Sequence record: NC_061451.1
Length of the DNA: 64,000 nucleotides
Reading direction: 5' to 3' (one strand)
The notes below the pieces were generated by a model that had not been told where the DNA came from, searched no databases, and saw only the letters and a list, made by a program, of their open reading frames with translations. Numbering within the stretch: position 1 is the first letter of the stretch; the number at the start of each line of letters is the position of its first letter. Below, piece after piece: positions 11,539-54,849 of this stretch. Both the position numbers and the translations under genes were made by a program.

Positions 11539-11799
11539 ATGTATCAATATGACCGCGATGAATTGAATGACCTGCCGCTTGACGTGCTGCATGGCGAAGC
11601 TGAAAAGCGTGGCTTGCTCGCTGACCTGGAAGACGATGATGATTGTCCTGACCGTGCAGTGCTGGTGGGCATGATCATTGATGATCAGAACGAGCGCAAT
11701 GCCGAAAACGAAGAGGAAGAGCAGCGCCGTCAGATGCAAGATGACGCTGACGATCACCGTCGCATGTTAGACGAACGCGACGGCTCAGACGACTGCTAA
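11539..11799 (+). CDS. Small acidic protein with HEH/Rho-N-like module
   Basis: LNDLPLDVLHGEAEKRGL...DRAVLVGMIID; ATG 11539 after GGAG. Confidence 0.7.
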   Translation: MYQYDRDELNDLPLDVLHGEAEKRGLLADLEDDDDCPDRAVLVGMIIDDQNERNAENEEEEQRRQMQDDADDHRRMLDERDGSDDC

Positions 11800-11800
11800 C

Positions 11801-12139
11801 ATGCTATACTCTGGGCAGCAATACGATACACTCAGTCCTGACCAGTTGAATGAGTGTTTCAATCTGATTGAAAGTTGCATGGTGGCCTCTGGCTGTCGTG
11901 GCTTTCAAATAGTGTTATCACCATCTGGTCATGGCGATTGTCGTAGCGTCGTCCACATTCAGCACCCACAGTATGCAGGTCACATTGAGTTCCCCTCAGT
12001 TGACCGTGATACTTTTCGTGTGACTCTCGTCGCAACACGCGGTTGCTATGACAGCCGCACCGTGTTCGTACCAAATTCAGATACAGCCTATTCAGTGATA
12101 GGTCTGTATCTCTCAAACTTTATAGGGGCTACAAAATGA
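11801..12139 (+). CDS. Hypothetical protein
   Basis: Coupled ORF in gene array. Confidence 0.65.
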   Translation: MLYSGQQYDTLSPDQLNECFNLIESCMVASGCRGFQIVLSPSGHGDCRSVVHIQHPQYAGHIEFPSVDRDTFRVTLVATRGCYDSRTVFVPNSDTAYSVIGLYLSNFIGATK

Positions 12140-12480
12140 AACGCCGCATTATTCGTATCGATCAGTCAGAGTTCAACGGTGAAGCGCTTGTCTTCCCACC
12201 ATCATTCAACATCACCGGCATTGACGTTGTGGTGCTTGTGACCGTGAAGCACGAAGATTTCGGTGGCTTGAAGTTTCAAGATACCTATCGTGTGAACGAA
12301 CTACGTGTAAGCGAACATACAAATCCCCTGCGTCAGGAGATTGAGATCGTAGAGTACAGCAAACTGCCGAACGATGAAGCAATCTTCACACGACTACTCG
12401 ACGTTGATTATTTCGACGACGACATTGCAGAGCGTGACCTGCGTCTGTACGATGCACCGACCACAATCGTCACTGCGTAA
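12136..12480 (+). CDS. Hypothetical protein
   Basis: Overlapping start/stop coupling. Confidence 0.7.
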   Translation: MKRRIIRIDQSEFNGEALVFPPSFNITGIDVVVLVTVKHEDFGGLKFQDTYRVNELRVSEHTNPLRQEIEIVEYSKLPNDEAIFTRLLDVDYFDDDIAERDLRLYDAPTTIVTA

Positions 12481-12488
12481 TAATCTTT

Positions 12489-12515
12489 AGGGCTGCCATC
12501 TTGGTGGCCCTTTTT
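12489..12515 (+). terminator. Intrinsic terminator
   Basis: AGGGCTGCCA-TCT-TGGTGGCCCT-TTTT. Confidence 0.75.
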
Positions 12516-12563
12516 GTTTTCTGTAAACTACACGCACAATCCCAACAATGCGAGAACGCACAG

Positions 12564-28991: not shown

Positions 28992-30203
28992 ATGGCTATC
29001 ATTTCCGCAGAAGAACAAGCGCGTCTGGACTCACTTGCTGCTATCGTAGCTAAGATGTGGGCACAAGGCGGCCCTGCTGTGCGTGATGCTCTGCGCTACG
29101 TTGCTAACCAAATGCTGAGCGACGAGCATTCATTCCTGTACGAAGAAGTGCCTGGTGTAACGCCTGACATTGAATCTGTCTACCACCATCTGAGCGATTT
29201 GCCACTGACGGGTATGACCCGCATCGTGCGCAATCCTGACTTGATCAGCTCGCTTGAAGATCTGATGAACAAAAACGAGCGTGAGATCTTCGGCTCTGCC
29301 GTACGTAACAGCGCGTACACTATGTTCAAACTTTTACCGCAGAATGAAACCTCGGTGTTCTGCCATCCAGGTAAAGGTGCTACCTCTCGCACCCAGCCGC
29401 GTCAGGTCGCTGAAAGACTGCATCGCGGTTTAAGCTACATGTTGTCCGTGCGCGGTCTGGACGCGTATATCAAAAAGGCTGATAATCAGATTCGCTCTTA
29501 CGGGCATACTCGCCTAGCCTCTCTGGTAATCGCAGTCGCAGTCAAAGGCGAACGCAGTGTTGCTACTCGCATCGTACCTCTGTGGCGTATGGACGATCAC
29601 ACGGAAGAGGTAGGCACGATTGAACTTGATCAGGATATCCCGAACGATCAGCCCGCTTACTCAACTGCGGTAGAAACCGATAGTCAGGTTTGGCAGAAGT
29701 TCGATGCAGAACACCTTATCGCTATCCTGCTCAAGCATGAGAATCATAGCGCGTCTAAGTTACGTGGCATGGACCGCGAAGAATTAGACGATACCTATGA
29801 AGCCTTCGTTGATGACTATCTTGACGACAACCAAGATGAGGAAGAAGATGAAGGGTGGGACGAAGAAGAGGATGAAGACGAAGAAGATGCCTTCTGTCCT
29901 GAAATCCCTTCGCGCCTAGCTCTGCCTATTGAACTGCCTATTGTTAATCTCGAACGTCCGAAGTTGGACATTCGTCCAGGTATGCGTTTGAAGACCAAAA
30001 AGCCTAAACAGTCTCATATTCAGAATATTCTGATTGATCCAGTTTGGCACGCAGTTGACCTACAAGACGAGAACAATATTCATTATTTCAGTGTGTCTAT
30101 TGTTGCCCGTGATACTGTCGGTCATAAGGCTATTTCAGCTTCGCCGCTTGAAGCACTGACTATCTCCAACGTGCTGATGCAGATCGCTGAAACTAACACT
30201 TAA
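28992..30203 (+). CDS. Protein with HEH-like module and acidic linker
   Basis: FDAEHLIAILLKH...KLRGMDREELDDTY followed by poly-D/E. Confidence 0.75.
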   Translation: MAIISAEEQARLDSLAAIVAKMWAQGGPAVRDALRYVANQMLSDEHSFLYEEVPGVTPDIESVYHHLSDLPLTGMTRIVRNPDLISSLEDLMNKNEREIFGSAVRNSAYTMFKLLPQNETSVFCHPGKGATSRTQPRQVAERLHRGLSYMLSVRGLDAYIKKADNQIRSYGHTRLASLVIAVAVKGERSVATRIVPLWRMDDHTEEVGTIELDQDIPNDQPAYSTAVETDSQVWQKFDAEHLIAILLKHENHSASKLRGMDREELDDTYEAFVDDYLDDNQDEEEDEGWDEEEDEDEEDAFCPEIPSRLALPIELPIVNLERPKLDIRPGMRLKTKKPKQSHIQNILIDPVWHAVDLQDENNIHYFSVSIVARDTVGHKAISASPLEALTISNVLMQIAETNT

Positions 30204-37556: not shown

Positions 37557-38948
37557 ATGATTTTCGATCTGCGCAAAAGTTTGGCCATGGTTCGTACCGT
37601 AATCGATGACCAAGTAATCTATAACTTCTACAACATGATTGGCCGCGATATGCAACTGCCCGGTACTACTCTCAAAGAGATTATCGACGTGCAGCGTAAG
37701 GGCGAACTGTGCACCAACATCATGTGGGGTACTCAGAAGATGGAGTATCGCACACTCAGATTCGATGAGCGTGGTGATCTTCTCTTAGACGTGACCGTTG
37801 GTCCGCATTGCTACGCACGGCTCTCTTACGATCAGATTGAACACTATGGGCGCAAAGAGTTTAAGGCTATTAACTGCATCGAGATCGATAGCTACCTCGC
37901 CCGTGACATTAGAGCGCATCTTCGCGCAGTGGGCCAAACTGAGCCTAAGCTCGAATGGTATGACAACGTGTCGGATGATGAACTGAAGGACGCTCTACTT
38001 TCAGTTGGTCACATGGGACCTCTGGCTTATGAAGGTAAATCTCGTAACCAGTTAGAGGACATGTTTGAGAAATTCCAGCGTAAGCACGATGCAGAATACA
38101 AGTACACGCACGCGCATATTGGCTTAGACCCAGACGAAAAGCTGCCTGCTGATTTGTATGAAGATGAGGCACGCTCAATCACTCGTCGTTCTTTTGCTCC
38201 TCAGAAGACTGTCGATATGATGATCACTGAGATCTCAAACGTGATGCGCATGTTCGATATCTGGGATTCAGCGCCGACATCCGAGACGCATGAGTGGTCA
38301 ATGCAGGAGGCGTACATGGCCTTCTATAACAGCTTAGTGATTGATAGCGATGGCAGCCGTCTGCGTGAACTGAAAGATAATCCACAGTTCGCTATCAACT
38401 TCATCTACGGCATGGCGGCAGACCTGAATTGGATTCACATCAACGAGATGACCGAAGACTATCGTGGCTCGGTTGTGAATCGCATCCTGCAGGAGATTGC
38501 TGTTGAGATCAGCACCTCTGATGATTACTGCACGACGGAGCACGGCATCGCTCTTATTAAGAAAGAAGAAGAGACAGAAGAAGAGGAGGAGGATGCTTCT
38601 GAGCCCGTCTCCATCGAAAAGAAAAAGAAGAAAGGCTTCCCGGATATTCGCTCAGTAGAAGAGGTGAACTATGACGCACTGCATATCATCGAGATTACAT
38701 ACAAACTGCCCAAGCAGCCTAAGCTGCGCACTAAGCTAGACGTACTGCAATCTCGTGAGTGCTATCTTGAGCACTTCTTCGGTTGTTTGAAAGAAAATGA
38801 TTGGCATAGATTAGACAATATCACTAATCTTGACCTGCGCCGTATTGTTGGTGCTGTTACTAAATCTAATGGTGGTAGATTCAGCCACAACGCCCTGTTA
38901 AACATAATTAAACGTGCAGCTAAGAAACTGGCTGCCACTGAGTTCTAA
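37557..38948 (+). CDS. Hypothetical protein with HEH-like module
   Basis: YDNVSDDELKDALLSVG...GKSRNQLEDMF; AGGAG RBS. Confidence 0.8.
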   Translation: MIFDLRKSLAMVRTVIDDQVIYNFYNMIGRDMQLPGTTLKEIIDVQRKGELCTNIMWGTQKMEYRTLRFDERGDLLLDVTVGPHCYARLSYDQIEHYGRKEFKAINCIEIDSYLARDIRAHLRAVGQTEPKLEWYDNVSDDELKDALLSVGHMGPLAYEGKSRNQLEDMFEKFQRKHDAEYKYTHAHIGLDPDEKLPADLYEDEARSITRRSFAPQKTVDMMITEISNVMRMFDIWDSAPTSETHEWSMQEAYMAFYNSLVIDSDGSRLRELKDNPQFAINFIYGMAADLNWIHINEMTEDYRGSVVNRILQEIAVEISTSDDYCTTEHGIALIKKEEETEEEEEDASEPVSIEKKKKKGFPDIRSVEEVNYDALHIIEITYKLPKQPKLRTKLDVLQSRECYLEHFFGCLKENDWHRLDNITNLDLRRIVGAVTKSNGGRFSHNALLNIIKRAAKKLAATEF

Positions 38949-40460: not shown

Positions 40461-40898
40461 ATGAAATTTGATCAAGCACCAACGAAAGCACAACTCGTGC
40501 TGCTGGCCCTCGCTCTCGAATCCGTTCTCCTCTCTATGGAGAAAACGTTTATCAACCGTAATCTGCTGGAGCAGTTACTTGCGAAGTACGGCATCTCGTT
40601 TAACGATCTGAAAGAGTTGCGAGAGTACGGCGAAAAGCATTCCGCCATCGGTACCAGCGTTGCTCAAGTTATGGAGATAGCTGCCTTGCATGTGGCTCAT
40701 CTGAAAACAGAACCTGTGCCTGAATACAGTCAAGACGACCTTGATCTAATTCGCGTAGAATACGAGCCAATCGATACGTCTGTCCTACGCCAGGGCGCTG
40801 TGAATGATGGGGTTATCACAGTGCAGCAAGCAGCCACTTTTGAGCGCGATCAGATACTGACTGCTATTCTTGAGTACCGACTGCGCTCAGAAGCATAA
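40461..40898 (+). CDS. Hypothetical protein
   Basis: ATG 40461 after GAGG. Confidence 0.7.
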   Translation: MKFDQAPTKAQLVLLALALESVLLSMEKTFINRNLLEQLLAKYGISFNDLKELREYGEKHSAIGTSVAQVMEIAALHVAHLKTEPVPEYSQDDLDLIRVEYEPIDTSVLRQGAVNDGVITVQQAATFERDQILTAILEYRLRSEA

Positions 40899-41154: not shown

Positions 41155-41976
41155 ATGCCAGAAGCACGCAAACCTCGCCCAGCTGATCGTTTCGCTAAAG
41201 CCCGTGCAGAGAAAAACTCACCGGAGCGTCAAGATGCGGCAGCCCAGCGCACGTATAAAGACACTCCGCCTAAATCTGTTCAGGTGAAACTTGATGCTGT
41301 GGCAGCTTCTAAGAAGAAAGTTTCTCGCGGCCCCAAGGCCTCTCGTCCACGTCAGTCGCCTGCTGTTGACGCAGCACCAAAGCCTCGCATTCGTGATGAG
41401 GAACGTGTGTACAATCTCGTACACATGATTCTCTCTGCGTGGAAAGCCGATGCAGAAAACGCGGCAGCAAGTGTGGGAATCATTAAAGTGTCTCGTCGTA
41501 AGATTGAGGGTGCGTTACGCGATCTCAAGAATACGCGCTTCACTAAAATCCCAGGCTTAATCAATGACGTGCTTGTCTACAATGAACTGGTAGCTGAGTT
41601 CGGACAGTGGGTGTACGTCGAGCACGACAGTCCTGATTGGATTTTTGTGCGCCTGCCTGAAAACAGCACGCCTGTGATTCGCGCTGACATTAGCTATGCC
41701 AAGACGGGTGAAACTTCCACGTCTGTTTCGACTTCTAGTGAAGTTCTGCTGAAAGATCTTAGCGAAGACGAAGAAGATGAGATCCCCGAGAATGTCGAGT
41801 ACGACGATGCGGACGAGACTGACGAAGACGAAGAGGAGCCGTATGACTACAGCGCTTGGTCTCTGCGTGACCTGCAGGAGTATGCGAAGCGCTATGACTT
41901 CTTGCAGCCCGACACTGAGGGGTTTGATGATCGCGAGAAGTTGATAGCAGCCATCGAGCTGGGGGAACAGCACTAA
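41155..41976 (+). CDS. Basic N-terminus, acidic linker, C-terminal HEH-like module
   Basis: YSAWSLRDLQEYAKRYDFL...DREKLIAAIE. Confidence 0.8.
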   Translation: MPEARKPRPADRFAKARAEKNSPERQDAAAQRTYKDTPPKSVQVKLDAVAASKKKVSRGPKASRPRQSPAVDAAPKPRIRDEERVYNLVHMILSAWKADAENAAASVGIIKVSRRKIEGALRDLKNTRFTKIPGLINDVLVYNELVAEFGQWVYVEHDSPDWIFVRLPENSTPVIRADISYAKTGETSTSVSTSSEVLLKDLSEDEEDEIPENVEYDDADETDEDEEEPYDYSAWSLRDLQEYAKRYDFLQPDTEGFDDREKLIAAIELGEQH

Positions 41977-42263: not shown

Positions 42264-43853
42264 ATGGCACGTTTCGAAACTAACACTAACCTGGTTGGCA
42301 AAACTATCGTCCTGCTGAACGGCACCAAAGCGAAGATTGAAGACGCTATCGTTTCTGGCTACAAAGTGAAAGGCCAGACCAAGCGCATCGCAACCCGTGA
42401 CGTTATCAAAGAGGGTGCGCACTTTAAAGAAATCGAGCGCACGCCGCTGAGCCAGCTGGAAGATACTGGTGAAGGTTATGTGAAGTTGAAAGAAGCCAAA
42501 GCTGCTTCTAAGAAAGCGCCTGCGAAAGACGCTAAAGCTACTGGCAAAAAAGCTGCGGCAAAAGACAAGCCTGCTAAGACCAGCAAAAAAGCTGCCGCTA
42601 AAGATAAGCCAGCGAAAGAGCAAGAGCCGAAAGTTCGCCGTAAGTCTGCGAAAGAGCAGGGCAACGATTATCAGGAACTCGCGCAGGCTATCATCAAAGG
42701 CGGTCGCCGTGCAGCGCCAGTTGAAATTGACAGCGTAGACGAAGCGCTGACCGATGCAATCGCTAAGCGTCTGACCGCTGTTGTCGAATCGTCTGAGATT
42801 GCGAAACTCGCCGCTGATAACAAAACGCCGATCGCTAACGCACTGACCGTAACTTACGGTGCTGAGTTTGCGACTGATGCAAACGTTGTGCAGATTACGC
42901 TGAACCTGCAATACGCTAAGCCGACTGCTGTTGAGTCTGCCGCTCCTACTCTGGAGAATGCCGAAGCAATCGCAATGCGTGCTGCTAAAATGGCCGCGCC
43001 GAAAGTGAGCGCTAAACTCAAGAAGGCAGTGCGTGAAGCATTCGATATTGAAACAGACCTTGAGCTGGGTACTGTGATTATGTCAGGCGATGATCAATTC
43101 GCTTACTACGGCGAAAGCGCGAAGCACGCTGGCAAAGCGCTGCTGTATGTTGTCGAAACTGACAAGTTCAAATCTGTCTTGGCCTCTACTCTGACCGACT
43201 ACGAACTGCCTGCTGATGAAGAAGCTGAGGCAGAAGAAGAGGAGGAAGAAGAAGAGGAGGAAGAAGAACCCGCTGATGACTTCGACGACGAAGAGGAAGA
43301 AGATGCGGACGATGCAGATGATGCCGACGATGCTGATGGCGACGACGACGAATTCCAGTACGTTGCTGTAGGCGATGAACACTTTGCTCTGGTCAACAAA
43401 AAGATCACAGCCAAGTATCACGATGCACTGGCTGAGCAATTCGGCGTTAGCACCGAAGCGCTGGTCCCAGGCTTAGTGTTGACCAACGGCGAGATCACTT
43501 TCGCTTATCTGGGCAACGATAGCAAAGGCGGCCTGCTCGTTATCGACCTCGACGACGATGCGGACGAAGACGACAACGTTCTGGTCTACCCGAAAGCCGA
43601 CGTTAAATCTCTGACCGACTTCTCTCCTGTGCTGGGTGATGCAGATGAAGAAGACGCAGACGATGCAGAAGAGACCGACGAAGAAGACGAAGATCAGGAC
43701 GACGACTTCGAATTTGACGATGCGCCGACTGCCGACCTCGAAGATCTGTCCGACGATGAGCTGCGTGACCGCGCTGTTGAGATGGGCCTGACCACTGTAC
43801 GCAAAGCTGACAAAATGAACGCCAAGCAACTGCGTGCGCTGCTGTCTGAATAA
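42264..43853 (+). CDS. Multi-domain protein: beta N-domain, Lys/Ala tract, poly-acidic tracts, C-terminal HEH-like module
   Basis: KKAPAKDAK tract; E/D runs; LEDLSDDELRDRAVEMGL...KMNAKQLRALL. Confidence 0.85.
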   Translation: MARFETNTNLVGKTIVLLNGTKAKIEDAIVSGYKVKGQTKRIATRDVIKEGAHFKEIERTPLSQLEDTGEGYVKLKEAKAASKKAPAKDAKATGKKAAAKDKPAKTSKKAAAKDKPAKEQEPKVRRKSAKEQGNDYQELAQAIIKGGRRAAPVEIDSVDEALTDAIAKRLTAVVESSEIAKLAADNKTPIANALTVTYGAEFATDANVVQITLNLQYAKPTAVESAAPTLENAEAIAMRAAKMAAPKVSAKLKKAVREAFDIETDLELGTVIMSGDDQFAYYGESAKHAGKALLYVVETDKFKSVLASTLTDYELPADEEAEAEEEEEEEEEEEEPADDFDDEEEEDADDADDADDADGDDDEFQYVAVGDEHFALVNKKITAKYHDALAEQFGVSTEALVPGLVLTNGEITFAYLGNDSKGGLLVIDLDDDADEDDNVLVYPKADVKSLTDFSPVLGDADEEDADDAEETDEEDEDQDDDFEFDDAPTADLEDLSDDELRDRAVEMGLTTVRKADKMNAKQLRALLSE

Positions 43854-43876
43854 GTAACCTGTAGTTCTGAATACAT

Positions 43877-43894: not shown

Positions 43895-43928
43895 ACACTG
43901 ACAACAAAGTTGATTGAGGAATCACATT

Positions 43929-45215
43929 ATGTCAAACGCAAACAAAATTCTGCTTAACGCTCGTGTACGCCGCTTAGACGGTACTGTTACTTACATCAAC
44001 AAAGTGAATGCTAACGGTTATAGCACCGATGCGAAAGGCCCGCAGATTCCTGTCAAGCGCATTGTGTTTGCAGGCAAGATGCTGAAAGAGATTGAACAGC
44101 CCTTTGAGAAAGGCGAGCACGTCATTGTGCAGGGCGTTGCAGTGAAGCTGAACAAGCGCCAGCAACGTGAGCTTGCTGATGGCACTCTCGATGAGAAAGC
44201 GCTGCGTCCTGAGTTCGGTAAGCTGGCAGTGATTGACCCTGATACAGGCAAAGCAACTGACGGCAAGAAAGTGAAGCCAACCAAGTCTGATGCTAAAGCC
44301 CCGAAAGCTGGCGCGAAAGCAAGTCTGAAAGCAACGCGTGAGCACAACAAAGAGCCGAAGCGCAGTCGCAAACAGCACAAAGCTGAAACGAACGATCTCA
44401 AAGACAGTCTGGACATTATCGACGAACGCAAATCACCGAAAGCGTCTCTGATTGAACGTCTGGATGCAGCAATCGCCGAAGCGAAAACGAAAGCACGCCG
44501 TAAGCTGTTAGCCGAAACGTTCGACATGGACTGGGCTGATATTAAAAAGCATGGCGGTGCAGGTATCGTTAAGCAGCACGGCCGCAAGAACGCCCAGAAG
44601 TTTATTGATCGTCAGACAGTGCAGGTCGATAGCACAACGTTCATCAAACAAATGCCAGCGCCGCTCAAGCGTCTTATTCAGGACACTGAGTTGCGTCTCA
44701 ATCAAAAGCAGATTGAGCAAGTGCTTGGTGCGCTGGGGCTTGATACGCAATTCTACGCAGTCGCCGTGCAGGAGCTGCTGGGCAAACTCAAACTGTCCAT
44801 AGGCGGTCGCGTGATCGAAGGCGAAGTTGTTCGAAAGGAGAACACGCCGAAGCCAAAAAGGTTCGTACACGCTGAGGCGCTATATGCAGACAAGAAAGAA
44901 GCGAAACGCCGCGTAAGCAAAATGAAATATGCGCTGCTGATTCCGCCTACGAAAGGTCTGCCTGCGTTACGCATCCATCAGGCAGAGGCAAAGCAGTCAC
45001 TCGCCGTTCTGCTGCACCTGAAGCCTGGGAACATCAAGCGTGGTCTGCTTGCGTATGACAACAAAGGCCGTGAGTATATGTATGTCGCTTGCGATATGAC
45101 GGGCCCTGTGTTCATCGATAAAGATAGCAACGAACTGGCGTTCACGTATGCCAATCTGATCGATAACTTCAAACTCAAAGCGCAGCCTGTGTCTGAACTG
45201 GACGTGGCCGTATGA
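43929..45215 (+). CDS. Basic protein sharing an N-terminal domain with 42264..43853
   Basis: L.GT...I.....GY.....I....V...G...KEIE in both. Confidence 0.8.
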   Translation: MSNANKILLNARVRRLDGTVTYINKVNANGYSTDAKGPQIPVKRIVFAGKMLKEIEQPFEKGEHVIVQGVAVKLNKRQQRELADGTLDEKALRPEFGKLAVIDPDTGKATDGKKVKPTKSDAKAPKAGAKASLKATREHNKEPKRSRKQHKAETNDLKDSLDIIDERKSPKASLIERLDAAIAEAKTKARRKLLAETFDMDWADIKKHGGAGIVKQHGRKNAQKFIDRQTVQVDSTTFIKQMPAPLKRLIQDTELRLNQKQIEQVLGALGLDTQFYAVAVQELLGKLKLSIGGRVIEGEVVRKENTPKPKRFVHAEALYADKKEAKRRVSKMKYALLIPPTKGLPALRIHQAEAKQSLAVLLHLKPGNIKRGLLAYDNKGREYMYVACDMTGPVFIDKDSNELAFTYANLIDNFKLKAQPVSELDVAV

Positions 45216-45598
45216 GAACTGAAATCATCGTAGCGGGAGTTCTCTCTCAACTTTACACGCGGCTGATTACGGCCGCTATAATGAAAGCGCATGTGTATTA
45301 CTCAGACCTTGCGCCGGTGGTATTCGGTGTGCAGCTTACCAAAGTCGGTAAGTCGCAGTATCAAGCGCTGTGGGATTTAGTAGCGCTGACGATGCAGATG
45401 GACCACGCACACGGCCGACCGCCTGTTGCTGCTCTGTATGTGTCTCGCGCTAATGCATCAAAACGACCGCCGCAAGCATTCTTCGCTGAATACGAGCGGC
45501 TAACTGGTAAGCGACTCAATGACGACGACTGGGAAGAGTTAGTCGATGAAGTATGGGCAGCTTACTCTCCACCAGAAATCTGTCAGGAGCCGACATGA
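45212..45598 (+). CDS. Hypothetical protein
   Basis: YYSDLA...DHAHGRPPVAALYVS...FF...W motif; family not named. Confidence 0.65.
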   Translation: MRTEIIVAGVLSQLYTRLITAAIMKAHVYYSDLAPVVFGVQLTKVGKSQYQALWDLVALTMQMDHAHGRPPVAALYVSRANASKRPPQAFFAEYERLTGKRLNDDDWEELVDEVWAAYSPPEICQEPT

Positions 45599-46053
45599 AG
45601 AAGTTGAAAGCCGTAAAGGTTAAAATTAGCCGCGGTGGTTATAAGCCTTCTTCTAAGGAAGAGGCAAAGAAGCTGGTGGCAGAGTTTCTGCTCGGCACCA
45701 TCGGCATTAGCCCAACGCAAGTCAGTCAACAACTGCTGTTGAATATCACGAACTACAACTATTTGACCTCTGTTGCGTATTCTGGACGTTCTACAGATTA
45801 CAGCCAGGCGGCAGCGCACAAAACTGTAAAAGAACTAAATGAATTTTGTCGAAAGCATAAAATTCAACTGGGCTTGCTAATTATGCCCCACACGTCGGCG
45901 TCTGAATATGATGGTGACGTAATTGTTGCAATCCCGTGGGAGCATGTTAAGAACAATCCGCAAATCCAGTCTGCCGTTAATTCTCTGTTTGAATCGGTTG
46001 AAGCAGACGGCTACCCACAGTATGTGACTGATGCTAAAACAGTAGAGGGATAA
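45595..46053 (+). CDS. Hypothetical protein
   Basis: ATG 45595 after AGGAG. Confidence 0.7.
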   Translation: MKKLKAVKVKISRGGYKPSSKEEAKKLVAEFLLGTIGISPTQVSQQLLLNITNYNYLTSVAYSGRSTDYSQAAAHKTVKELNEFCRKHKIQLGLLIMPHTSASEYDGDVIVAIPWEHVKNNPQIQSAVNSLFESVEADGYPQYVTDAKTVEG

Positions 46054-46054
46054 G

Positions 46055-47335
46055 ATGTTCTACGACTATGTATTCAACTTCGACGAGCGCCAGACGCTAC
46101 TGTCGTTAGCGGAATCCAAGTATCTTCTTAAACGGGACATTCCCGAGTATCTTAAAAAGTCCAAACACGCAATTGAGATTCGTCACACTGTGACCAATCG
46201 TGGACGCGAGCGCCGCTCAGGAACAATAACAACTCCTATCGTGCCGCGTATTCACACCCGTGATGTTATGCGCTTGCTTGATGATATTCGTGACAACGCG
46301 ACTTACAGCTCCTGCCAAAGTCTCGCTGAACTGTTTGAATTGGGCTTGGGCGTTCCGCGCCAGAAAGATATTGCTACTTACCTTCATGCTTATTCGCGTG
46401 AGCACGATAAGAAAGGTATCGGTATCAAGTATATCCGCAAGCTGGTGGTTGATTATCATCGTAAGCACCGTCGTAGTATGGCGGGCAGTCGCTGGTTAAT
46501 GCCTGCTGCTTACACGGCCAATCTGCTGAACATGCAGAACTTCATTCATCTGAAAGAAGACGGCTACAAGGGTAAAGTCAAAACGCCAGACGGCATCCCT
46601 GTAGTCTTGATTTACCAGAGCACTGAATACGCGACTGGCGAGTTTACTCTGTGTGACGCATTCATGATTAGTCCGATGGGATATCCAATGCCGTTCGCAC
46701 AGATTGCGCTGCGTCCCGAGTTCAAGGCTGTGCCTAAAACGTTTTGCTCCCAAGCTCTGCGTGGCAAAGGCATGTACTCAATGGTTCTCGGTATGATTTA
46801 CTGGGAGAAAGGTGATTCAGTCGAATTGACACGCGAAGTCATGGAGATTGATGACAACCAGTATCTCACGTTGCTCGATGATGAACGTTATGCTGACCGC
46901 CGCTCTGATGAATATTCAGCGATGCTGGTCAAGCGTGAAGAGTTCCGTCGCAATCGTGACAAGTGGCAGTCAGTGATTGATAAGTACGGCCAGACAGTTC
47001 GAACCCTCAAGCCTGAGATTAGCGCTCGTCTTGATCGTGCTCGTCAGTTCTTCTACGACCGCTCCGAGTTCCTGAAAGAGTTCGAGTCTCAGGAGAAGCG
47101 TGAGAACACCCGCGCATCAAAACGTTTTGCTGTAGCGTCTGCGATGTTTGCTGCGATTGACTGTGGGACAATTGCTGATCGTCAGACCTACCTTGCAGTG
47201 AGCACAAAGATTGATAAAGTGCATGACATTCTCGGTAAGTGGGGATTCAACACTGTAAAATCTGTTAATGCTAGTTTGAAGAAGTCTCTTTTAACCTATG
47301 ACGAATCAGGCGTATCTCGCGTCTGGTCACTATAA
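46055..47335 (+). CDS. Hypothetical protein with one Sel1-like repeat
   Basis: CQSLAELFELGLGVPRQKDIATYLH. Confidence 0.7.
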   Translation: MFYDYVFNFDERQTLLSLAESKYLLKRDIPEYLKKSKHAIEIRHTVTNRGRERRSGTITTPIVPRIHTRDVMRLLDDIRDNATYSSCQSLAELFELGLGVPRQKDIATYLHAYSREHDKKGIGIKYIRKLVVDYHRKHRRSMAGSRWLMPAAYTANLLNMQNFIHLKEDGYKGKVKTPDGIPVVLIYQSTEYATGEFTLCDAFMISPMGYPMPFAQIALRPEFKAVPKTFCSQALRGKGMYSMVLGMIYWEKGDSVELTREVMEIDDNQYLTLLDDERYADRRSDEYSAMLVKREEFRRNRDKWQSVIDKYGQTVRTLKPEISARLDRARQFFYDRSEFLKEFESQEKRENTRASKRFAVASAMFAAIDCGTIADRQTYLAVSTKIDKVHDILGKWGFNTVKSVNASLKKSLLTYDESGVSRVWSL

Positions 47336-47356
47336 CCCTTATCTGAGGAGATAAAC

Positions 47357-50300
47357 ATGTCCGAGAACAATCAAAGCGGAGCTACTCGCTTCGGCACAGA
47401 AGTGCAGGCCGGCATCGCAGAAGCGCAACGCCGTGCTAACTCTGCTGAGAGTGGCAAGCTGAACAAATGCACGATCATCGTGCTGACTTCGATTGACGCC
47501 AACCAGCGTTACTCTTATCTGTCCGCAGACGAACAACTGCGCGAAGAACTGGTGCGTGGTAAAGTAATCAATCGTCTGCCTGATCTGTTAGAGCGTGCTG
47601 GTGGTAATACCGCTGCTGACAATAACAGCGCGTTCCACATCCTGCATCCAAACAACGGTGTGCCTACCTCGATCGATGCTCGCATCAAAGTGGGCGAAGG
47701 CAATGCGGTCATTCTGTCATATACTGTAAACAAAGCAGTGACAGAGATGCACGGTAGCTTATCGCTTGCTCTGTTTGCATCTGGCGCCGAAGACTTAAAT
47801 GATCTGGCCGCTGATTTCGGTATTCACGCAATTGCGATTGTTGAAGAATCGAAAGCCGCTGAGTTCATCAAAGGACTTGAAGCTCAGGTGGAAGCGTTGA
47901 ATATTGTAAATCTCACTAGCATTGATGATTCTAACGATTCGTTAGACCTGCCAGTGATTGACTTCGCTGCATTAGCGGGCAATCCTACAACAGTGCTTAC
48001 GGGCGCTGTGCGTACCTTCATCATGCAATCAATCAGCGGCGAAGTCTTCGCTGCAATCCCTAATAACGGAGAACTGAACGTGAAAAACGATAACGTGGCT
48101 CAGCCTGCTGACCTGGAAGAAGACTTCGACAACAATGATGAGATTGTTGATCAGAACGGCGGCGAAGGCGAAGTTACTGGCGAAGAGCTGCTGGGCTACA
48201 AAGCAGAAAATCTTTCGCTTGACCAAATGCGTAGTGCGCTTGAAGCGATCAACTACGACCTGTCTGAAATGACGGAAGAAGCAATCCGTGAAGCGTTCGA
48301 AACTGAACAGAACCTTTACCTGGGTGGCGGCGATGATGAATCTTCCGAAGAAGAGGAAGATGAAGACGCCACTGATGTTGACAGCGACGAAGAAGAAGAG
48401 GAAGAAGACGAGGAGTTCGATGCTCCTGCGTATCTGGCTCAAGCGCTCGCTGCTGAAAACTTTAGCCGTAGCGATCTGAAACTGCTGGTCAAGTCGCAAG
48501 ACCTGAAAGTGATGAAGAACGACACTCCTGAAACTCTGGTGCAGAAGCTGCTGGACCTGGTGCAGGACGCATCGTCTGATGAAGTGTTCGAACTGATCAC
48601 TGTGTTCGTTGAACTGCTGGACGAGCACGGCGTTGAGTGTGACGCGCTGCGTGCTACCATCGCTGAGGATGAAAGCGATGAAGACGAAGAAGAGGACGGC
48701 GAAGACGAAGACGCCGATGAAGATGGCGACGACGAAGAAGAGGAAGATGAAGAGGAGTCTGATGAAGACGAATCTGAAACCGAATCTGACGACGAACCTG
48801 CAACGCTGTTTTCTGCCTCTGACGTTACTGATCCTCTCGACTACTTCCAGTTCGAAGGTGGTGACCTGACTCACGAACAACGCGCCGCTGCCGTACAGGC
48901 GATGGGTTCAAGCACTGTTGGTCTGAACATCGTTCAGGTCATGAAAGCGTTCAATCAAATCCGTTCACAGTCTAACGCGATTGACATTGCCGCTGATGAA
49001 GCCGACTCTGCGCTGTACGACATGCTGACTGCGCTGCCGTATGCAACGCTGCTGAGCTTCGCTCAAGAGATTGAGCTGGACGTTGACGGCGAAGAGTCTG
49101 CCGAAGATCTCGTCACTTTGCTGATGGACGAATCTACTGCCGACAGCGATACGCTGAAAGCGCTGGCGTATGTGTTTGAAACCTACGGCGGCCTGGGTGT
49201 TGAAGCAGATGATATCCTGCTGATGGACTGGCATGAAGCGCTGGCGCTGGTTATTCCTGTGTATGCATCGTCAGACGAAGTTGAGTCCGATGCAGAAGAA
49301 GACGAAGACGAAGACGTTATCGCTGATGAAGATTCGTCTAACGCTAACCTGAAGTTCCTGAAATCTGTTGACGTCAACAACCCTGTCGGCCCGATGCTCG
49401 AAGTTGATATGGACCGCACTCTGGTTATCAACTACACCTTCACTGACGGTAACACTTACCGCGATGTGCAAGATGAGCTGGCTGATATCGGTGGCGTTAA
49501 CTACCGCTTCCCGTTCAATCTGGGCAAAGCTGGTAAAGCAAACAAGAGCAGCGCGCCTGGTAGCCTGATTGCTCCTGCTGAACATCTGATCGCAATGTTA
49601 GACCGCGCTGGTACTACTCGCTTCTTAGCTGACCCGAACACCTTCGATGTTGGTGTGTGGGCAGAATCTCTGGAGCGTATGCTGAACGCAGAAATCGCTA
49701 ACAATCTGTATGCTGGTCGCATTGAAGACGGCGCTGACCCGCAGCAAGCTGGCATCGTAGTCGGTGACTTCATCGATGAAGACGAGCAAGCAGAAGTTGC
49801 TGACCTCGGCCTGCTGGATGAAGATGAGCTGGAAGCGTACACTGGTGATCATCTGCCGATTGCAAGCCTGTACAATGCGCAAGCCCGCGTACGTCCAGTC
49901 AACGTCGATAGCTCTTACGTTGCACTGAGCACCGTAGTGCTGAACGTTGCAGTCCCTGGCTTCTGGTGTGACTCTGATGTTGGCCGTCTGGTGCAAGCGT
50001 GTGTTAATCGCGTAATCAGCCTGGCAGAAAGCGTTGAAGGCATCAAAGTGTACGCAGGCTTCACTCTGGAATCTGCTGCGCTGCTGAACAACGGTCGCCT
50101 GTACGAAGTTGTTGGTGCGCTGCGTGAGATGGACGGTGTGCAGTCTTACTCCGCCGCAGACGCTGCTAACTTCTCAGAAGCGGAAGACATTATCGAAGTA
50201 GCGTCTTCTATCGATGATCGTGACCTGCCGTTCACTGTACTGGCAAGCGGCCTGTCTGGCGCAACGTTTGAAAACGGCGGTGACCTGACCGTGCTGGTTC

Positions 50301-50368
50301 CGTGCTCTGTCTTCGACGAAGAAGAAGATGAGTCCGAAGAGGACGAGTCAGAAGAAGACGAAGAGTAA
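47357..50368 (+). CDS. 1003-aa highly acidic protein with three HEH-like modules
   Basis: Long D/E tracts; AENLSLDQMRSAL, AENFSRSDLKLLV...PETLVQKLL, LPYATLLSFAQEIEL...AEDLVTLL; GAGGAG RBS. Confidence 0.85.
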   Translation: MSENNQSGATRFGTEVQAGIAEAQRRANSAESGKLNKCTIIVLTSIDANQRYSYLSADEQLREELVRGKVINRLPDLLERAGGNTAADNNSAFHILHPNNGVPTSIDARIKVGEGNAVILSYTVNKAVTEMHGSLSLALFASGAEDLNDLAADFGIHAIAIVEESKAAEFIKGLEAQVEALNIVNLTSIDDSNDSLDLPVIDFAALAGNPTTVLTGAVRTFIMQSISGEVFAAIPNNGELNVKNDNVAQPADLEEDFDNNDEIVDQNGGEGEVTGEELLGYKAENLSLDQMRSALEAINYDLSEMTEEAIREAFETEQNLYLGGGDDESSEEEEDEDATDVDSDEEEEEEDEEFDAPAYLAQALAAENFSRSDLKLLVKSQDLKVMKNDTPETLVQKLLDLVQDASSDEVFELITVFVELLDEHGVECDALRATIAEDESDEDEEEDGEDEDADEDGDDEEEEDEEESDEDESETESDDEPATLFSASDVTDPLDYFQFEGGDLTHEQRAAAVQAMGSSTVGLNIVQVMKAFNQIRSQSNAIDIAADEADSALYDMLTALPYATLLSFAQEIELDVDGEESAEDLVTLLMDESTADSDTLKALAYVFETYGGLGVEADDILLMDWHEALALVIPVYASSDEVESDAEEDEDEDVIADEDSSNANLKFLKSVDVNNPVGPMLEVDMDRTLVINYTFTDGNTYRDVQDELADIGGVNYRFPFNLGKAGKANKSSAPGSLIAPAEHLIAMLDRAGTTRFLADPNTFDVGVWAESLERMLNAEIANNLYAGRIEDGADPQQAGIVVGDFIDEDEQAEVADLGLLDEDELEAYTGDHLPIASLYNAQARVRPVNVDSSYVALSTVVLNVAVPGFWCDSDVGRLVQACVNRVISLAESVEGIKVYAGFTLESAALLNNGRLYEVVGALREMDGVQSYSAADAANFSEAEDIIEVASSIDDRDLPFTVLASGLSGATFENGGDLTVLVPCSVFDEEEDESEEDESEEDEE

Positions 50369-51906: not shown

Positions 51907-51921
51907 TCGCTGATCTGAAAA

Positions 51922-52000: not shown

Positions 52001-52036
52001 CAAGTCGCTTCTCATCCCATACAGGAAATAAAAACC

Positions 52037-52789
52037 ATGGCTAAATCTGCTAAAGTAACCGTAACCGTCGCACAGAAAGTTCTGGCTCAGATGCTGGGTG
52101 TTGTTGTAGCGAACGCAAGCGAGAAAGAACTCGTTGCGATTCTGTCTGACCTGGGCCTGACTGTTGCTGCGAAAGGTAAAGGTGCTAAAGCTGAGAAAGC
52201 TGCGAAAGGCGGCAAGAAAGCTAAAGCCGCTACCGTTGCTCAGATCGTTAAGGCCGTTGAAGAAGAGGAAGCTATCTCCCTCGACGGCGTGAGTGAAGAT
52301 GACCTGCGTGCTGCGGTCGTCAAAGCTAAGCTGGCTAAGGCCAACAAAGCTAAAGCGCTGGACGAAGAGGAGTTGACTGAACTCCTGACCGACGCAATGG
52401 GTGCCGAGTCTGATGAAGACGAGGAAGAGGACGAAGAAGAAGAGGACGAAGACGAGGACGAAGACGACTCGGACGACGAAGACGAAGATGAAGACGACGA
52501 GGACTCAGATGATGAAGATGAGGAGGAGGAAGACGAAGACGAGGATGAAGATGAGGACGAAGATGAAGATCTCGACCTCGACGGCCTCGACGAAGACGAA
52601 CTCCGCGCCCTCGTGATCGACAACAAGCTGGCCACTAAGGCCAAAGCTAAAAAGATGGACGAAGACGAACTTCGTGAACTGTGTGAATCCCACTTCGGCG
52701 GCGACGATGAAGACGAAGACGAAGATGAGGACGAAGACGATGAAGACTTCGACGACGAAGACGAAGACGAAGACGAAGACGACGAATAA
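52037..52789 (+). CDS. Charge-blocked protein: basic tract, two HEH-like modules, long poly-D/E tracts
   Basis: LDGVSEDDLRAAVV...LDEEELTELL and LDGLDEDELRALVI...MDEDELRELC; ATG 52037. Confidence 0.85.
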   Translation: MAKSAKVTVTVAQKVLAQMLGVVVANASEKELVAILSDLGLTVAAKGKGAKAEKAAKGGKKAKAATVAQIVKAVEEEEAISLDGVSEDDLRAAVVKAKLAKANKAKALDEEELTELLTDAMGAESDEDEEEDEEEEDEDEDEDDSDDEDEDEDDEDSDDEDEEEEDEDEDEDEDEDEDLDLDGLDEDELRALVIDNKLATKAKAKKMDEDELRELCESHFGGDDEDEDEDEDEDDEDFDDEDEDEDEDDE

Positions 52790-53002
52790 GTCCTGATCTG
52801 CCGCTGCCCTGCAAGACTAATGAGTGTCTGCGCAGGGCAAGAAATATTCGAAAAATAGTTCGAATTATTTCGCAAAAAGTTTGAAAAATTCCTGTCGTTG
52901 TTTATTGCACATAGTAATATTCGACTACAGGAATTAAACCTGAAAAATTTTACTTTTATCCAACGCGACGAGTCGCACACAATAAATTCACGGAGTATTA
53001 CG

Positions 53003-53515
53003 ATGACTAAGAAAATCATTTCTGGCCTGAACAAAAACCTGAAAGCTATCGCTAAATCAGAAGCTGCCCTGGCCAAAACTGTTGTTGCTACCAACAAAGA
53101 GATCGAAAACCTGGGTTCACAGCGTGCTGGTATCGAAGCGCAGATCGCTGAACTGTCTGGCGTTGCTGCTCCTGCCAAAGCTGATAAAAAAGCTAAAGGC
53201 GCGAAAGCAGAAAAAGCGGCCAAGCCTGCTAAAGCTGAAAAAGCAGCTAAAGCCGGTAAGAAAGAAAAAGCTGCTAAAGCTGAAAAGCCTGCCAAAGCTG
53301 ATAAAAAAGCTAAAGGCGCGAAAGCGGATAAAGCTGCTAAGCCTGCCAAAGCTGAAAAAGCTGGCAAGAAAGAAAAAGCTGCTACCAAGCCTGCTAAAGC
53401 TGATAAAAAAGCTAAAGGCGCCAAGGCCGACAAAGCTGCTAAAGGCGGTAAAGCTGACAAAGCCGGTAAGAAAAAGAAAGCGCAGTCTGATGACTTCGAA
53501 TTCGAAATGGAATAA
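53003..53515 (+). CDS. Histone H1/AlgP-like Lys-Ala-Pro protein with N-terminal coiled coil
   Basis: PAKADKKAKGAKA repeats; ends DDFEFEME; ATG 53003 after GGAG. Confidence 0.8.
   Translation: MTKKIISGLNKNLKAIAKSEAALAKTVVATNKEIENLGSQRAGIEAQIAELSGVAAPAKADKKAKGAKAEKAAKPAKAEKAAKAGKKEKAAKAEKPAKADKKAKGAKADKAAKPAKAEKAGKKEKAATKPAKADKKAKGAKADKAAKGGKADKAGKKKKAQSDDFEFEME
53171..53430 (+). repeat. Coding tandem repeat (3 units of ~102-117 bp)
   Basis: CCTGC(C/T)AAAGCTGATAAAAAAGCTAAAGGCGC at 53171, 53288, 53390. Confidence 0.85.
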
Positions 53516-53612
53516 GCAAGCGGTCGCATAGCGCGATAACTTGATCGAGAGGGCAGCGCTGACGGGCGTTTGCCCTCTTGTCGTATCTATCTCATTTTCG
53601 AGGCTCTTTAAA

Positions 53613-54098
53613 ATGTCCAAACAAGAAGTATTCAACAGGCTTGATGATCTTCACTCCAAAGAACGTGAGCGTATCAAACAAGCCAAGCAAGGCCCCTCCT
53701 ATTTCGAACTGACGAACCTGCGTATTGAAGCAGCCGCTCGTCTAGCTCGTGCTCTCCAAACTCTCAAAGCCGCAAACGTTGTTGGTAACGTTGAAGGTGT
53801 CTCTCTGCAGGAAGATGCGCTTGAAGTCGCTCAAGCCTACTGGACTGCTATCTTAGATGGCTTAACCCCTGTAGTAGTTGATGACTCGCCTATGCGCAAG
53901 CTGCTTGCTGGTATGCCTGCATGTATCGAAGCCTTCCGTGTTGTCGTAATGGAAAGCGCTATGCGTGAACATCTGGTCGTTCAATGCAATGCGATTGCAG
54001 ATGACATTAAGGGCTTCCCGCAACTGACTGGGCATGTTCTGCCTACTATTCAACACACCTGCGAAGAGGGGTGCAACTGTGGCTCAATCACTGAGTGA
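53613..54098 (+). CDS. Hypothetical protein
   Basis: ATG 53613 after GAGG. Confidence 0.7.
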   Translation: MSKQEVFNRLDDLHSKERERIKQAKQGPSYFELTNLRIEAAARLARALQTLKAANVVGNVEGVSLQEDALEVAQAYWTAILDGLTPVVVDDSPMRKLLAGMPACIEAFRVVVMESAMREHLVVQCNAIADDIKGFPQLTGHVLPTIQHTCEEGCNCGSITE

Positions 54099-54849
54099 GA
54101 AGATTAACCGTTACTTCAATCTGATGGAGGACATCCGTGCTGAGATGTTCCGTGTGATTGATGTATCTGACCGTTACTTCGGTATCGTTAGTTTCAACAC
54201 TAACATGCAGGCACTGCAAACCACACTGGTGAGCAAGTCCACCCTGATGGAAGTTAAGCTGCTTGAGGGTATCACTGGTGCGGAGCTGATTGCGTTTGGC
54301 AATATGGTTCACACTGTAGAGCAATGGGTTGCTGGTGGCATGAAGGGTGCTTTCCCTATCGAGCAGACCAAAGACGTGTATGCCAAATATCGCGCTGCTA
54401 CCTCAGATGAACCACAGGCACAAAGTGAACCTGAGCCTGCTAATACCCCGCAGCCTGATGCTGATGAGTTAGACAGCCAGGAACTGGACAATATCAAAGT
54501 TCAACTTCTGTCCTTCGATGACTCTGAACTGATCGACCATGCCGCTCAGTTTAAACTTGGGACGCGTACACGCCTGAGAAGAATGAGCCGAGACGATCTG
54601 CTGGACATGCTGTTTGACCATCACGGTATCTATGCAGAAAACGACCAGCGCCGTAATGAAAGTGTTGCAGACTGGTTAGAACGTATACCTCTTGATGATG
54701 CGCTCCGTGAAGTCGACCGCATAGATGATAGCAGTGTACTTGATCACGTTGCGGACGCTATGAGCGTTATGACGGGTGTCAATGACGCTGTGACGCGAGC
54801 GCGTATTAAGCAGGCTCTGAAAGAGCTACACACTAAGCCCGCGCAGTAA
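54079..54849 (+). CDS. Protein with HEH-like module
   Basis: LLSFDDSELIDHAAQFKLGTRTRLRRMSRDDLLDML; likely GTG start 54079. Confidence 0.75.
   Translation: MAQSLSEKINRYFNLMEDIRAEMFRVIDVSDRYFGIVSFNTNMQALQTTLVSKSTLMEVKLLEGITGAELIAFGNMVHTVEQWVAGGMKGAFPIEQTKDVYAKYRAATSDEPQAQSEPEPANTPQPDADELDSQELDNIKVQLLSFDDSELIDHAAQFKLGTRTRLRRMSRDDLLDMLFDHHGIYAENDQRRNESVADWLERIPLDDALREVDRIDDSSVLDHVADAMSVMTGVNDAVTRARIKQALKELHTKPAQ

Follow-up and report, generated by a model that had tools for sequence, protein, structure and literature searches.

A family of predicted helix-extension-helix modules embedded in acidic proteins of Erwinia phage pEa_SNUABM_7

Does a short two-helix pattern that recurs in acidic hypothetical proteins of a jumbo phage represent a genuine domain and, if so, what might that domain hold on to? 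The question is raised by the final 64 kb of the genome of Erwinia phage pEa_SNUABM_7 (positions 201636-265635 of NC_061451.1). This whole stretch of 64,000 nucleotides is called the window below, and coordinates refer to it unless another source is named. A preliminary description, made from the sequence alone, had counted about ten copies of the pattern in gp261, gp303, gp318, gp324, gp325, gp330, gp333 and gp336, each of which is annotated as 'hypothetical protein'. We find that four of these copies, in gp325, gp333 (two) and gp336, belong to one family of modules, for which a helix-extension-helix (HeH) fold is predicted.

pEa_SNUABM_7 is a jumbo phage of the genus Snuvirus with a genome of 265,635 bp, and its host is the fire-blight bacterium. 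It falls in the Lu11/PaBG/Y3/Alexandra/AD1 group of 'hairy' jumbo myoviruses (PMC7412058, PMC6143709). Positions 42264-50368 of the window are 100% identical to both Erwinia phages pEa_SNUABM_7 and pEa_SNUABM_14.

Core copies of the module and their acidic surroundings

The regular expression of the preliminary description matches gp325 at residue 492 and gp333 at residues 82 and 181, and a mildly relaxed form also catches gp336 at residue 146. The strict pattern gave three matches in the real proteins and none in 1000 per-protein shuffles. A first hidden Markov model (HMM), seeded with the four copies and iterated over six-frame open reading frames (ORFs) of the genome and of seven related phage loci, converged on 30 domains. 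For pEa_SNUABM_7 it reported exactly four copies, namely the C-terminus of gp325, modules a and b of gp333 and the module of gp336, with domain E-values of 1e-14 to 2e-20; the best reversed-sequence match had an E-value of 0.8. A second, broader HMM was built on 50 non-redundant family members (alignment A4) and retrieved the same four copies from the six-frame translation of the whole genome, with independent E-values (iE) of 5e-12 to 4e-21. The next match in the genome was gp303 at 0.064, and the best reversed-sequence match stood at 0.37. Six-frame translation of the complete genome (265 kb) yielded no fifth significant copy, and separate examination of the 1.6 kb outside that scan (the end of the gene for the single-stranded DNA-binding protein, SSB, and the start of the UvsX gene) revealed no copy. 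The four core copies, listed here, are demonstrably homologous.

43734..43850, plus strand: gp325 core module at the C-terminus, residues 491-529; HMM iE 4.8e-14, hhalign probability 97.7%
52277..52402, plus strand: gp333 core module a, residues 81-122; HMM iE 3.6e-15, orthologous copy in 10 homologues
52574..52699, plus strand: gp333 core module b, residues 180-221; HMM iE 4.1e-21, AlphaFold2 confidence (predicted local distance difference test, pLDDT) 85
54502..54627, plus strand: gp336 core module, residues 142-183; HMM iE 4.8e-12, present in the AD1 orthologue

The figure of about ten was therefore an overcount. The HMM scans of the phage proteome, with their reversed controls at 0.37-0.8, confirm four copies only; the seven other sites have no significant HMM match (iE at least 0.064), two or three of them being probable or positional relatives and the remainder showing resemblance at the level of fold at best.

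The signature of the module is [DE]-L-x-x-[LM]-[SD]-E-D-E-L-R-x-x-V-V-x-x-x-L-x-T-x-x-K-A-K-K-[LM]-D-E-D-E-L-x-x-L-L. In alignment A4 the positions L12, V16, V17, L21, A28, L32, L37, L40 and L41 are each 94-100% hydrophobic, the helix starts (N-caps) are 52-76% D/E, and the columns of the linker T-x-x-K-A-K-K are 48-66% K/R with the alanine conserved at 90%. The net charge of the module is acidic, with a mean of about -6 when short flanks are counted.

Three of the four window copies have a 30-residue flank that is 67-93% D/E. Module b of gp333 is bordered by 93% D/E tracts on either side, and the gp336 module is the sole core copy without a strong D/E tract alongside. In the wider family, 66% of 50 modules have a 30-residue flank of at least 40% D/E, compared with a mean of 14.5% for the window proteome, which demonstrates that the association with acidic tracts is real. 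The earlier statement that the modules lie nearly always next to D/E tracts is borne out by both sets of figures. Over the entire protein the D/E content is 44% in gp333 and 24% in gp325 and gp330. Two of the tracts are given below.

43647..43721, plus strand: gp325 acidic tract before the module, ending DDDFEFDD, as read from the sequence
52403..52573, plus strand: gp333 poly-D/E linker between the modules, as read from the sequence; its length differs among orthologues

The gp325 module stands directly downstream of its acidic tract and of DDDFEFDD, and is kept in all orthologues. The acidic-aromatic motif DFEF was found in gp325 (residues 487-490, window 43722-43733) and at the C-terminus of gp334, only these two among 100 window proteins. 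The orthologues of gp333 all have the invariant C-terminal ending EDFDDEDEDEDDE.

Comparison with orthologues located the module in places where the window proteins lack a canonical copy. The gp318 orthologues of Alexandra, SNUABM_35, AD1 and the metagenomic phage L013 carry a canonical module in an acidic insert at about residues 390-450 (iE about 5e-16). At this site gp318 of the window and of Y3 show a gap of about 62 residues, and the window protein retains only KEEETEEEEEDA.

38562..38597, plus strand: gp318 acidic remnant, residues 336-347; alignment gap relative to Alexandra, SNUABM_35 and AD1, the cassette being deleted

The gp324 orthologues of Alexandra, SNUABM_35 and L013 have a C-terminal canonical module (iE 5e-19). 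In AD1 the gp324 orthologue stops in the acidic tract, and the module is a separate ORF of 50 residues, gp311 (positions 6775-6927 of the AD1 locus L008). This Dickeya phage protein is a natural 'module alone' protein, and it also appeared among the Foldseek neighbours described below (A0A384ZYQ1). The gp336 module is present in the window and in AD1 and absent from the Alexandra and SNUABM_35 orthologues. Both modules of gp333 are kept among its orthologues (P0001-P0012), with a D/E linker of about 15 to about 75 residues; P0010 is without module b. The number of copies per genome is three in Y3, four in pEa_SNUABM_7, five in Alexandra and six in AD1. On these alignments, the module has been gained and lost as a cassette, usually together with poly-D/E linkers, in gp318, gp324, gp325, gp333 and gp336, and it has been duplicated within the Alexandra/Y3-like jumbo phages.

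All window genes are on the plus strand without exception. The block that holds the module genes is flanked by SSB and UvsX-like genes (gp245 and gp246) and by three topoisomerase II genes (gp337, gp341 and gp344). It lies in the plus-strand non-structural region, devoted to replication and nucleotide metabolism, about 56 kb away from the minus-strand structural block. This places the family beside genes of replication and recombination.

A profile search of 1.84 billion representative proteins retrieved 31 clusters at E no greater than 1e-3, several of them with 2-4 tandem copies, and no curated family covers these clusters. They include orthologues of gp318, gp324, gp325 and gp333, as well as small acidic metagenomic proteins with two modules that are organised like gp333 (N-terminal helices, a K/G-rich tract, a module, a D/E tract and a second module). 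In two larger proteins, P0013 and P0014, three or four tandem modules follow an orphan globular domain. When the natural gp325 module was compared with phage genomes by tblastn, the matches were confined to the Erwinia/Dickeya group (48 records); a gp325-based search of viral contigs gave 599 pattern matches and no relative among them. P0014, with four modules, is encoded downstream of PDDEXK_1 and AAA_24 genes and close to a DNA polymerase A gene, and on a 137-kb contig P0021, with two modules, has DNA polymerase A on one side and a RecA-like gene on the other. These neighbourhoods are of the same replication/recombination kind as the window block. We considered whether the N-terminal domains of P0013 and P0014 are SSBs: they had no Pfam, PDB or NCBIfam match, and gene position alone favours the idea, for P0014.

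Two further relatives stand apart from the acidic type. P0019, a metagenomic protein of 285 residues, has four non-acidic relatives of the module, at least three of which follow a CGPKxGxxxRWTKxEL lead-in, with Ser-rich linkers between them. These non-acidic copies indicate that the fold is not bound to D/E tracts. P0040 (632 residues) is membrane-anchored, has a central RsgI-like anti-sigma domain (Pfam RsgI_M, E 6e-23) and an acidic tail, and contains about five HeH-like repeats (LGLLTQEEIDELDTKDLKDVLKDYY). It may be a cellular relative of the module, found in a setting of quite another kind.

Predicted fold and relation to known HeH domains

To model the module, a 49-residue construct of gp333 module b was submitted to AlphaFold2 with an alignment of 15 rows. 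The resulting model (pLDDT 85, predicted template modelling score 0.62) has helices at 11-20, 26-31 (short) and 34-45. Two acidic amphipathic helices are thus predicted, with the basic K-A-K-K linker between them forming the short third helix. The modelled architecture is that of HeH domains, in which two helices and an extended linker occupy about 35-45 residues. When the model was compared with the PDB by Foldseek, the highest query TM-score (0.64; root-mean-square deviation 1.7 over 41 columns, E 4.5) belonged to 1zbh_A, the 3'hExo exonuclease, which has an N-terminal SAP domain. Among the top 50 neighbours in the predicted viral structures of BFVD, those with names were 'Rho termination factor N-terminal domain' (seven), SAP (one), HeH/LEM (one) and 'DNA binding protein' (one), with query TM-scores of 0.6-0.8, probabilities of 0.4-0.97 and E-values of 0.6-4; the enrichment of names is qualitative.

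SAP, LEM, Rho_N, HeH and Ish1 belong to one Pfam clan. Across the 50 family members, sub-threshold Pfam matches were recorded to SAP (six), Ish1 (three), LEM (two), Rho_N (one) and HeH (one), 13 members in all, and no unrelated family recurred more than three times. The best scores were 20.5 bits for SAP (E 3.6e-4, cut-off 23.9), 21.1 for Ish1 (cut-off 26.6) and 14.1 for LEM, the last with the gp325 C-terminus (cut-off 24). The gp325 module has sub-threshold matches to SAP (E 0.0013) and LEM (E 0.036). Searching Pfam with family consensus sequences did not raise the SAP score, which was lower than for individual members. The proposal that the two-helix pattern fits HeH domains is therefore upheld as a prediction by the confident model and by neighbours named Rho_N, SAP and HeH, although no individual match is significant.

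The SAP domain (PF02037; SAF-A/B, Acinus, PIAS and the C-terminus of Ku70) has the same size of about 35-45 residues and the same order of amphipathic helix, basic extended linker and second helix; the first helix of the module has the leucine spacing 'ELR..h...L', and SAP is the most frequent sub-threshold Pfam family (six of 50). Unlike the classical SAP domain, which is net basic and eukaryotic, the module has strongly acidic helices and is set in poly-D/E. Its linker is some 3-5 residues longer than that of SAP and has a short helix around the invariant alanine. Phage Rho_N-like domains (PF07498) are likewise small helical HeH units, widespread in uncharacterised proteins of phages and giant viruses, and they are the commonest named Foldseek neighbours of the module b model (seven of the top 50, query TM-score 0.6-0.7). 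The distance between the hydrophobic residue that precedes helix 2 and the first Leu/Ile of that helix agrees with E. coli Rho. However, just one of the 50 members touches the Rho_N model (E 0.01). LEM, HeH and Ish1 (PF03020, PF12949 and PF10281) share the helix-extension-helix architecture, with a best LEM E-value of 0.0053; against this, all matches of the module to them are sub-threshold, the module is without a membrane protein context, and BAF is not known to have a homologue in bacteria or phages.

Taken as a prediction, it is well supported that the module is an autonomously folding HeH mini-domain of about 42 residues and of the SAP, Rho-N or LEM type. HeH domains and phage 'Rho_N-like' domains are already known, and the module would be a divergent HeH subfamily lying outside the curated libraries. 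What distinguishes this subfamily is the longer, structured basic linker, the near-obligate embedding in poly-D/E and the shuffling of the cassette among several proteins.

Several other identities were considered and rejected. The sole match of the PDB profile search (E about 1e-4) was to residues 119-149 of Nudix ADP-ribose pyrophosphatases/methanol dehydrogenase activator. It was treated as a compositional coincidence because the matched segment is part of the Nudix fold and not of an HeH fold. An EF-hand reading (DLDLDGLDEDEL / 'DLDGLDEDEL') was discarded: module b of gp333 has D and L at positions 8 and 12, where the 12-residue EF-hand loop (D-x-[DNS]-x-[DNS]-G) has a hydrophobic residue and Glu, 'DxDG' is missing from the gp325, gp336 and gp318-type copies, and the S_100 match is at chance level (E 0.38). 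A mimic of the ribosomal stalk P1/P2 or L12 was considered for gp333, with its N-terminal helices, A/K/G hinge and acidic tail; no Ribosomal_60s or stalk family was matched in Pfam or NCBIfam. Finally, no Rho_RNA_bind or ATPase family match was found in the module-bearing proteins, and the absence of the Rho RNA-binding OB fold and of the ATPase domain shows that these are not Rho homologues.

Weaker sites and neighbouring elements

A loosened pattern that catches five of the seven weaker sites gave 56 matches in the real proteome, compared with 50.9 +/- 6.5 in shuffles. Since it is no commoner than expected by chance, pattern matching alone cannot establish these sites. With hhalign, the module profile was compared with an alignment of the orthologous family of each window protein; the background score is 17 or less. 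The weaker sites are the following.

11566..11682, plus strand: gp261 site; pattern-level claim, HMM and hhalign not above background
29700..29786, plus strand: gp303 site, about residues 237-265; HMM iE 0.064, top non-core match in the genome, adjoining an acidic tract
37953..38081, plus strand: gp318 residues 133-175, probable divergent HeH-like unit; hhalign probability 53.5%, score 28.9, HMM not significant
40752..40880, plus strand: gp323 C-terminus, residues 98-140 (DTSVLRQGAVNDGVITVQQAATFERDQILTAIL); hhalign probability 20.8%, score 20.5, HMM iE 0.98
41848..41964, plus strand: gp324 C-terminal HeH-like segment, residues 232-270, after an acidic tract; Pfam Ish1 E 4e-4
48203..48325, plus strand: gp330 site a, residues 283-323; AlphaFold2 helices at residues 288-297 and 307-323, pLDDT 82-87
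48458..48562, plus strand: gp330 site b, residues 368-402; AlphaFold2 helices at residues 371-380 and 391-401, pLDDT 90-95
49034..49132, plus strand: gp330 site c, residues 560-592; claimed copy unsupported, no HMM or hhalign signal

Support is intermediate for the N-terminal site of gp318 and for the C-terminus of gp324. The gp318 segment is conserved in six orthologues and is probably a divergent HeH-like unit, as judged by profile comparison. The C-terminus of gp324 in the window is not matched by the module HMM, is at background in hhalign and reaches 21.1 bits against Pfam Ish1, below the cut-off of 26.6. It forms a helix-loop-helix that differs from the canonical module and stands at the exact site of the canonical module of the orthologues, which gives intermediate support to a module that has diverged or been replaced.

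Profile comparison reveals no similarity of the three gp330 sites to the core module, or of one site to another (hhalign at background). Conservation of sites a and b extends to 32 orthologues, the distant JA29 type among them. An AlphaFold2 model of gp330 residues 272-424 has pLDDT 82-95 except in the acidic tract, and site b belongs to a four-helix unit in it; the named viral neighbours found with Foldseek include SAP twice and Rho termination factor three times (E 0.2-4). We regard sites a and b as HeH-like in predicted shape alone. At site c a helix-loop-helix pattern is kept in close orthologues. The gp303 site is borderline: its hhalign score was 28, the second best, with the first profile and 13, at background, with the broader one, and the second-helix motif 'MDxxEL' is also found in relatives. 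Sequence comparison does not raise gp261, gp303 or gp330 site c above chance level. The C-terminus of gp323, absent from the preliminary description, is an additional HeH-like candidate, and a weak one.

The block also encodes proteins with strongly basic tracts. K/A-rich tracts are present in gp325, gp326 and gp333, and gp334 has histone-like repeats.

53003..53515, plus strand: gp334, coiled-coil N-terminus followed by histone-H1-like K/A repeats, ending DDFEFEME, as read from the sequence

The K/A repeats of gp334 (AKADKKAKGAKAEKAAKPAKAEK) occur about three times. The protein has no Pfam match and falls in phrog_38087, to which no function is assigned there; it is a candidate basic partner from the same gene block. 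Proteins gp325 (42264-43853) and gp326 (43929-45215) are paralogues which share an N-terminal domain of about 60 residues (GKTIVLLNGTKAKIE...KEGAHFKEIE and ARVRRLDGTVTYIN...FAGKMLKEIE), followed by the K/A-rich tracts. A small beta-rich unit also occurs twice within gp325 (GTVIMSGDDQFAYYGES and GLVLTNGEITFAYLGND). Neither the shared N-terminal domain nor the beta-rich units matched known families.

Upstream of the window lies gp245, a gp32-like SSB (record positions 199300-200556; 101-1357 of locus L020). Its C-terminal tail of about 150 residues consists of four alternating poly-D/E and poly-K/S blocks (DDDEDEDDDDD...KKKKGAKGKADKKKRR...DDDDEDDDEDDEDD...KSKKSKSKSKS). The UvsX protein, gp246, has a K/A-rich tract at its start and NDDEDDD at its end. 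The SSB tail and the UvsX ends together indicate that charge-block tails are recurrent on the DNA-transaction proteins of this phage. UvsX (record positions 200616-203117; L020 1417-3918; window 1-945) is a UvsX/RecA-like protein of 833 residues with an insert of 347 residues at 309-655. The insert begins with Cys (CFADDTRIRT), ends in VSHN followed by Ser and interrupts the conserved RecA 'GGxALKFY | S.VRL' site. Its junction residues are of the intein type, and the insert probably contains a homing-endonuclease domain; comparison with PDB sequences gave no match.

A conserved element, CTGGACAAAATnrTGGT (CTGGACAAAAT), followed by about 30 similar bases (CCTGTnnTAyAmT), is present in four copies, all of them intergenic, and two related hairpins accompany it.

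39714-39730, 40901-40917, 41985-42001 and 42158-42174, plus strand: element copies, upstream of gp321, gp324 and gp325 (twice)
41003-41036 and 42057-42091: two related terminator-like hairpins (GACTGTnAG...CTnACAGTCCTTTTT), downstream of two element copies

With up to two mismatches allowed, 0.08 copies of the element are expected by chance, and the rest of the 265-kb genome holds one (two mismatches, in coding sequence). The element may be a local promoter or operator that co-regulates gp321, gp324 and gp325. A sigma-70 promoter scan of 40.3-60 kb found no excess, with 15 sites compared with 16.7 in shuffles.

Possible roles of the module

We propose that HeH modules tether charge-block disordered proteins to DNA or to the replisome, a reading to which we give an even chance of being correct; both the ligand and the role of the acidic tracts are deduced indirectly. 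On this proposal each module would attach weakly to nucleic acid through its basic linker, irrespective of sequence, much as SAP domains do. The presence of several modules per protein, and of several such proteins, would create avidity, and avidity would retain the charge-block disordered proteins, which bear poly-D/E and H1-like K/A tracts, at the replisome or on phage DNA that is being replicated. For the basic surfaces, DNA would have a competitor in the neighbouring D/E tracts; such competition could result in autoinhibition and faster exchange, or the tracts could buffer basic partners, for example gp334 and the basic stretches of the SSB tail. A comparable arrangement is found in HMGB1, T4 gp32 and T7 gp2.5, where a small nucleic-acid-binding unit (for which the module is a candidate) stands beside D/E runs; like the acidic tails of SSBs, the module proteins have acidic-aromatic C-terminal motifs and a replication-cluster context. 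The analogy is architectural and without sequence kinship, and the tracts of the module proteins are far longer, with a unit that is repeated and mobile between proteins. In known cases, D/E repeats beside DNA-binding domains autoinhibit binding or speed up target search (PMC10250230).

A number of results weigh against the tethering proposal. Net acidity is unusual in a DNA-binding domain and would equally suit binding to a basic protein. Foldseek found no PDB match to the module b model at E no greater than 0.001, the E-values of the named viral neighbours are not significant, no Pfam score for any HeH-type family was at or above the gathering cut-off, and the PDB profile search returned no SAP, LEM or Rho chain. 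There is also precedent for a protein ligand, in that LEM domains bind the protein BAF and not DNA. The globular domains joined to the modules matched no known family in Pfam, NCBIfam, PDB and PHROG searches, so that function cannot be transferred from within the same protein. A literature search found no functional work on the module-bearing proteins (expression, localisation or binding). The context, the basic linker and the charge-block tails of the SSB fit a role in association with DNA or the replisome, and do not separate binding of DNA from docking to protein.

The chief rival, which we consider unlikely but deserving of attention, is one of protein docking: the HeH unit would bind one common protein, as LEM binds BAF, and recruit the acidic proteins to it, which is the hub that the preliminary description had proposed. 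Partners could be a basic nucleoid protein, the H1-like gp334, the SSB tail or topoisomerase II. The net acidic module with its exposed acidic helices would suit a protein with a basic surface, K/A-repeat proteins of very basic character are encoded in the block itself (gp334, and the tracts in gp325, gp326 and gp333), and both DFEF in gp325 and gp334 and EDFDDEDEDEDDE in the gp333 orthologues resemble short linear docking motifs; P0014 ends in DDFEMA and sits in an SSB-like gene slot. However, among the polar features it is the basic linker that is most conserved, and not an acidic or hydrophobic groove, and the named structural neighbours are chiefly the nucleic-acid-associated Rho_N and SAP. 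That the poly-D/E tracts are DNA-mimic decoys which sequester host DNA-binding proteins (nucleoid proteins, restriction or defence nucleases, RNA polymerase), with the HeH unit merely positioning them on DNA, is in our view very unlikely. Close relatives differ freely in the length of their tracts, which speaks for a role as spacer or as bulk charge, long basic tracts are found in these proteins too, and the known phage DNA mimics Ocr and Arn are folded, with patterned charge and not homopolymeric D/E runs. The extreme acidity noted for gp333, gp325 and gp330 and the position of the genes in the non-structural plus-strand part of the genome would suit decoys, and acidic disordered regions acting as DNA mimics are documented in other proteins (PMC10987829, PMC8208478).

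It is more improbable still that the HeH proteins are core or ejection proteins which enter the capsid together with the genome, the module binding packaged DNA. The Foldseek neighbours do include a structural protein of an ascovirus and a virion core protein of an iridovirus, but the genes are in the replication and nucleotide-metabolism region remote from the structural block, and the distant homologues are likewise in replication clusters; virion proteomes for Y3, AD1 or Alexandra were not found in a literature search. Hardly any credence can be given to the remaining view, that there is no domain and the repeats are chance or compositional matches produced by helical, charged low-complexity sequence. 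It draws on the copies proposed for gp261, gp303 and gp330 site c, which do not exceed background, on the loosened pattern, equally common in shuffled proteins, and on the Nudix match, which is probably compositional. Against it, the four core copies and the 31 clusters share fixed hydrophobic positions (94-100%), reversed-sequence controls fail, the strict pattern is absent from 1000 shuffles, the AlphaFold model is confident, and the copies stay conserved between orthologues in spite of variable flanking D/E tracts. The view is refuted for the core family, whose existence as a family is thereby established, and stands only for gp261, gp303 and gp330 site c.

A wider version of the tethering proposal, which we think quite unlikely, is that multivalent HeH anchors, H1-like K/A proteins, poly-D/E proteins and the SSB tail coacervate with replicating DNA into a charge-block 'chromatin' or condensate. 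Its components would be gp334 and the K/A tracts of gp325, gp326 and gp333, the poly-D/E of gp333 and gp330, and the alternating blocks of SSB. If this were true, the phage would concentrate recombinase, SSB and topoisomerase II in a replication compartment that has no membrane, with the HeH cassette as the address label, and a jumbo phage would be organising its DNA without a protein-shelled nucleus.

Eukaryotic chromatin and nuclear-envelope proteins are the best-known carriers of HeH-type mini-domains (SAP, LEM, Rho-N), and many phage proteins bear the label 'Rho termination factor N-terminal domain'. The family described here is a tractable case: the unit is 42 residues long, there are 3-6 per genome, gain and loss are visible, and the proteins combine acidic and basic disordered tracts with replication and recombination neighbours. 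If the unit is only a generic weak DNA tether, the result is a useful annotation and not a new system. Once shown, the ligand would annotate hypothetical proteins across the Alexandra/Y3/AD1 jumbo phages of Erwinia and Dickeya and dozens of metagenomic relatives, and would also bear on whether phages organise their DNA by means of charge-block disordered proteins.

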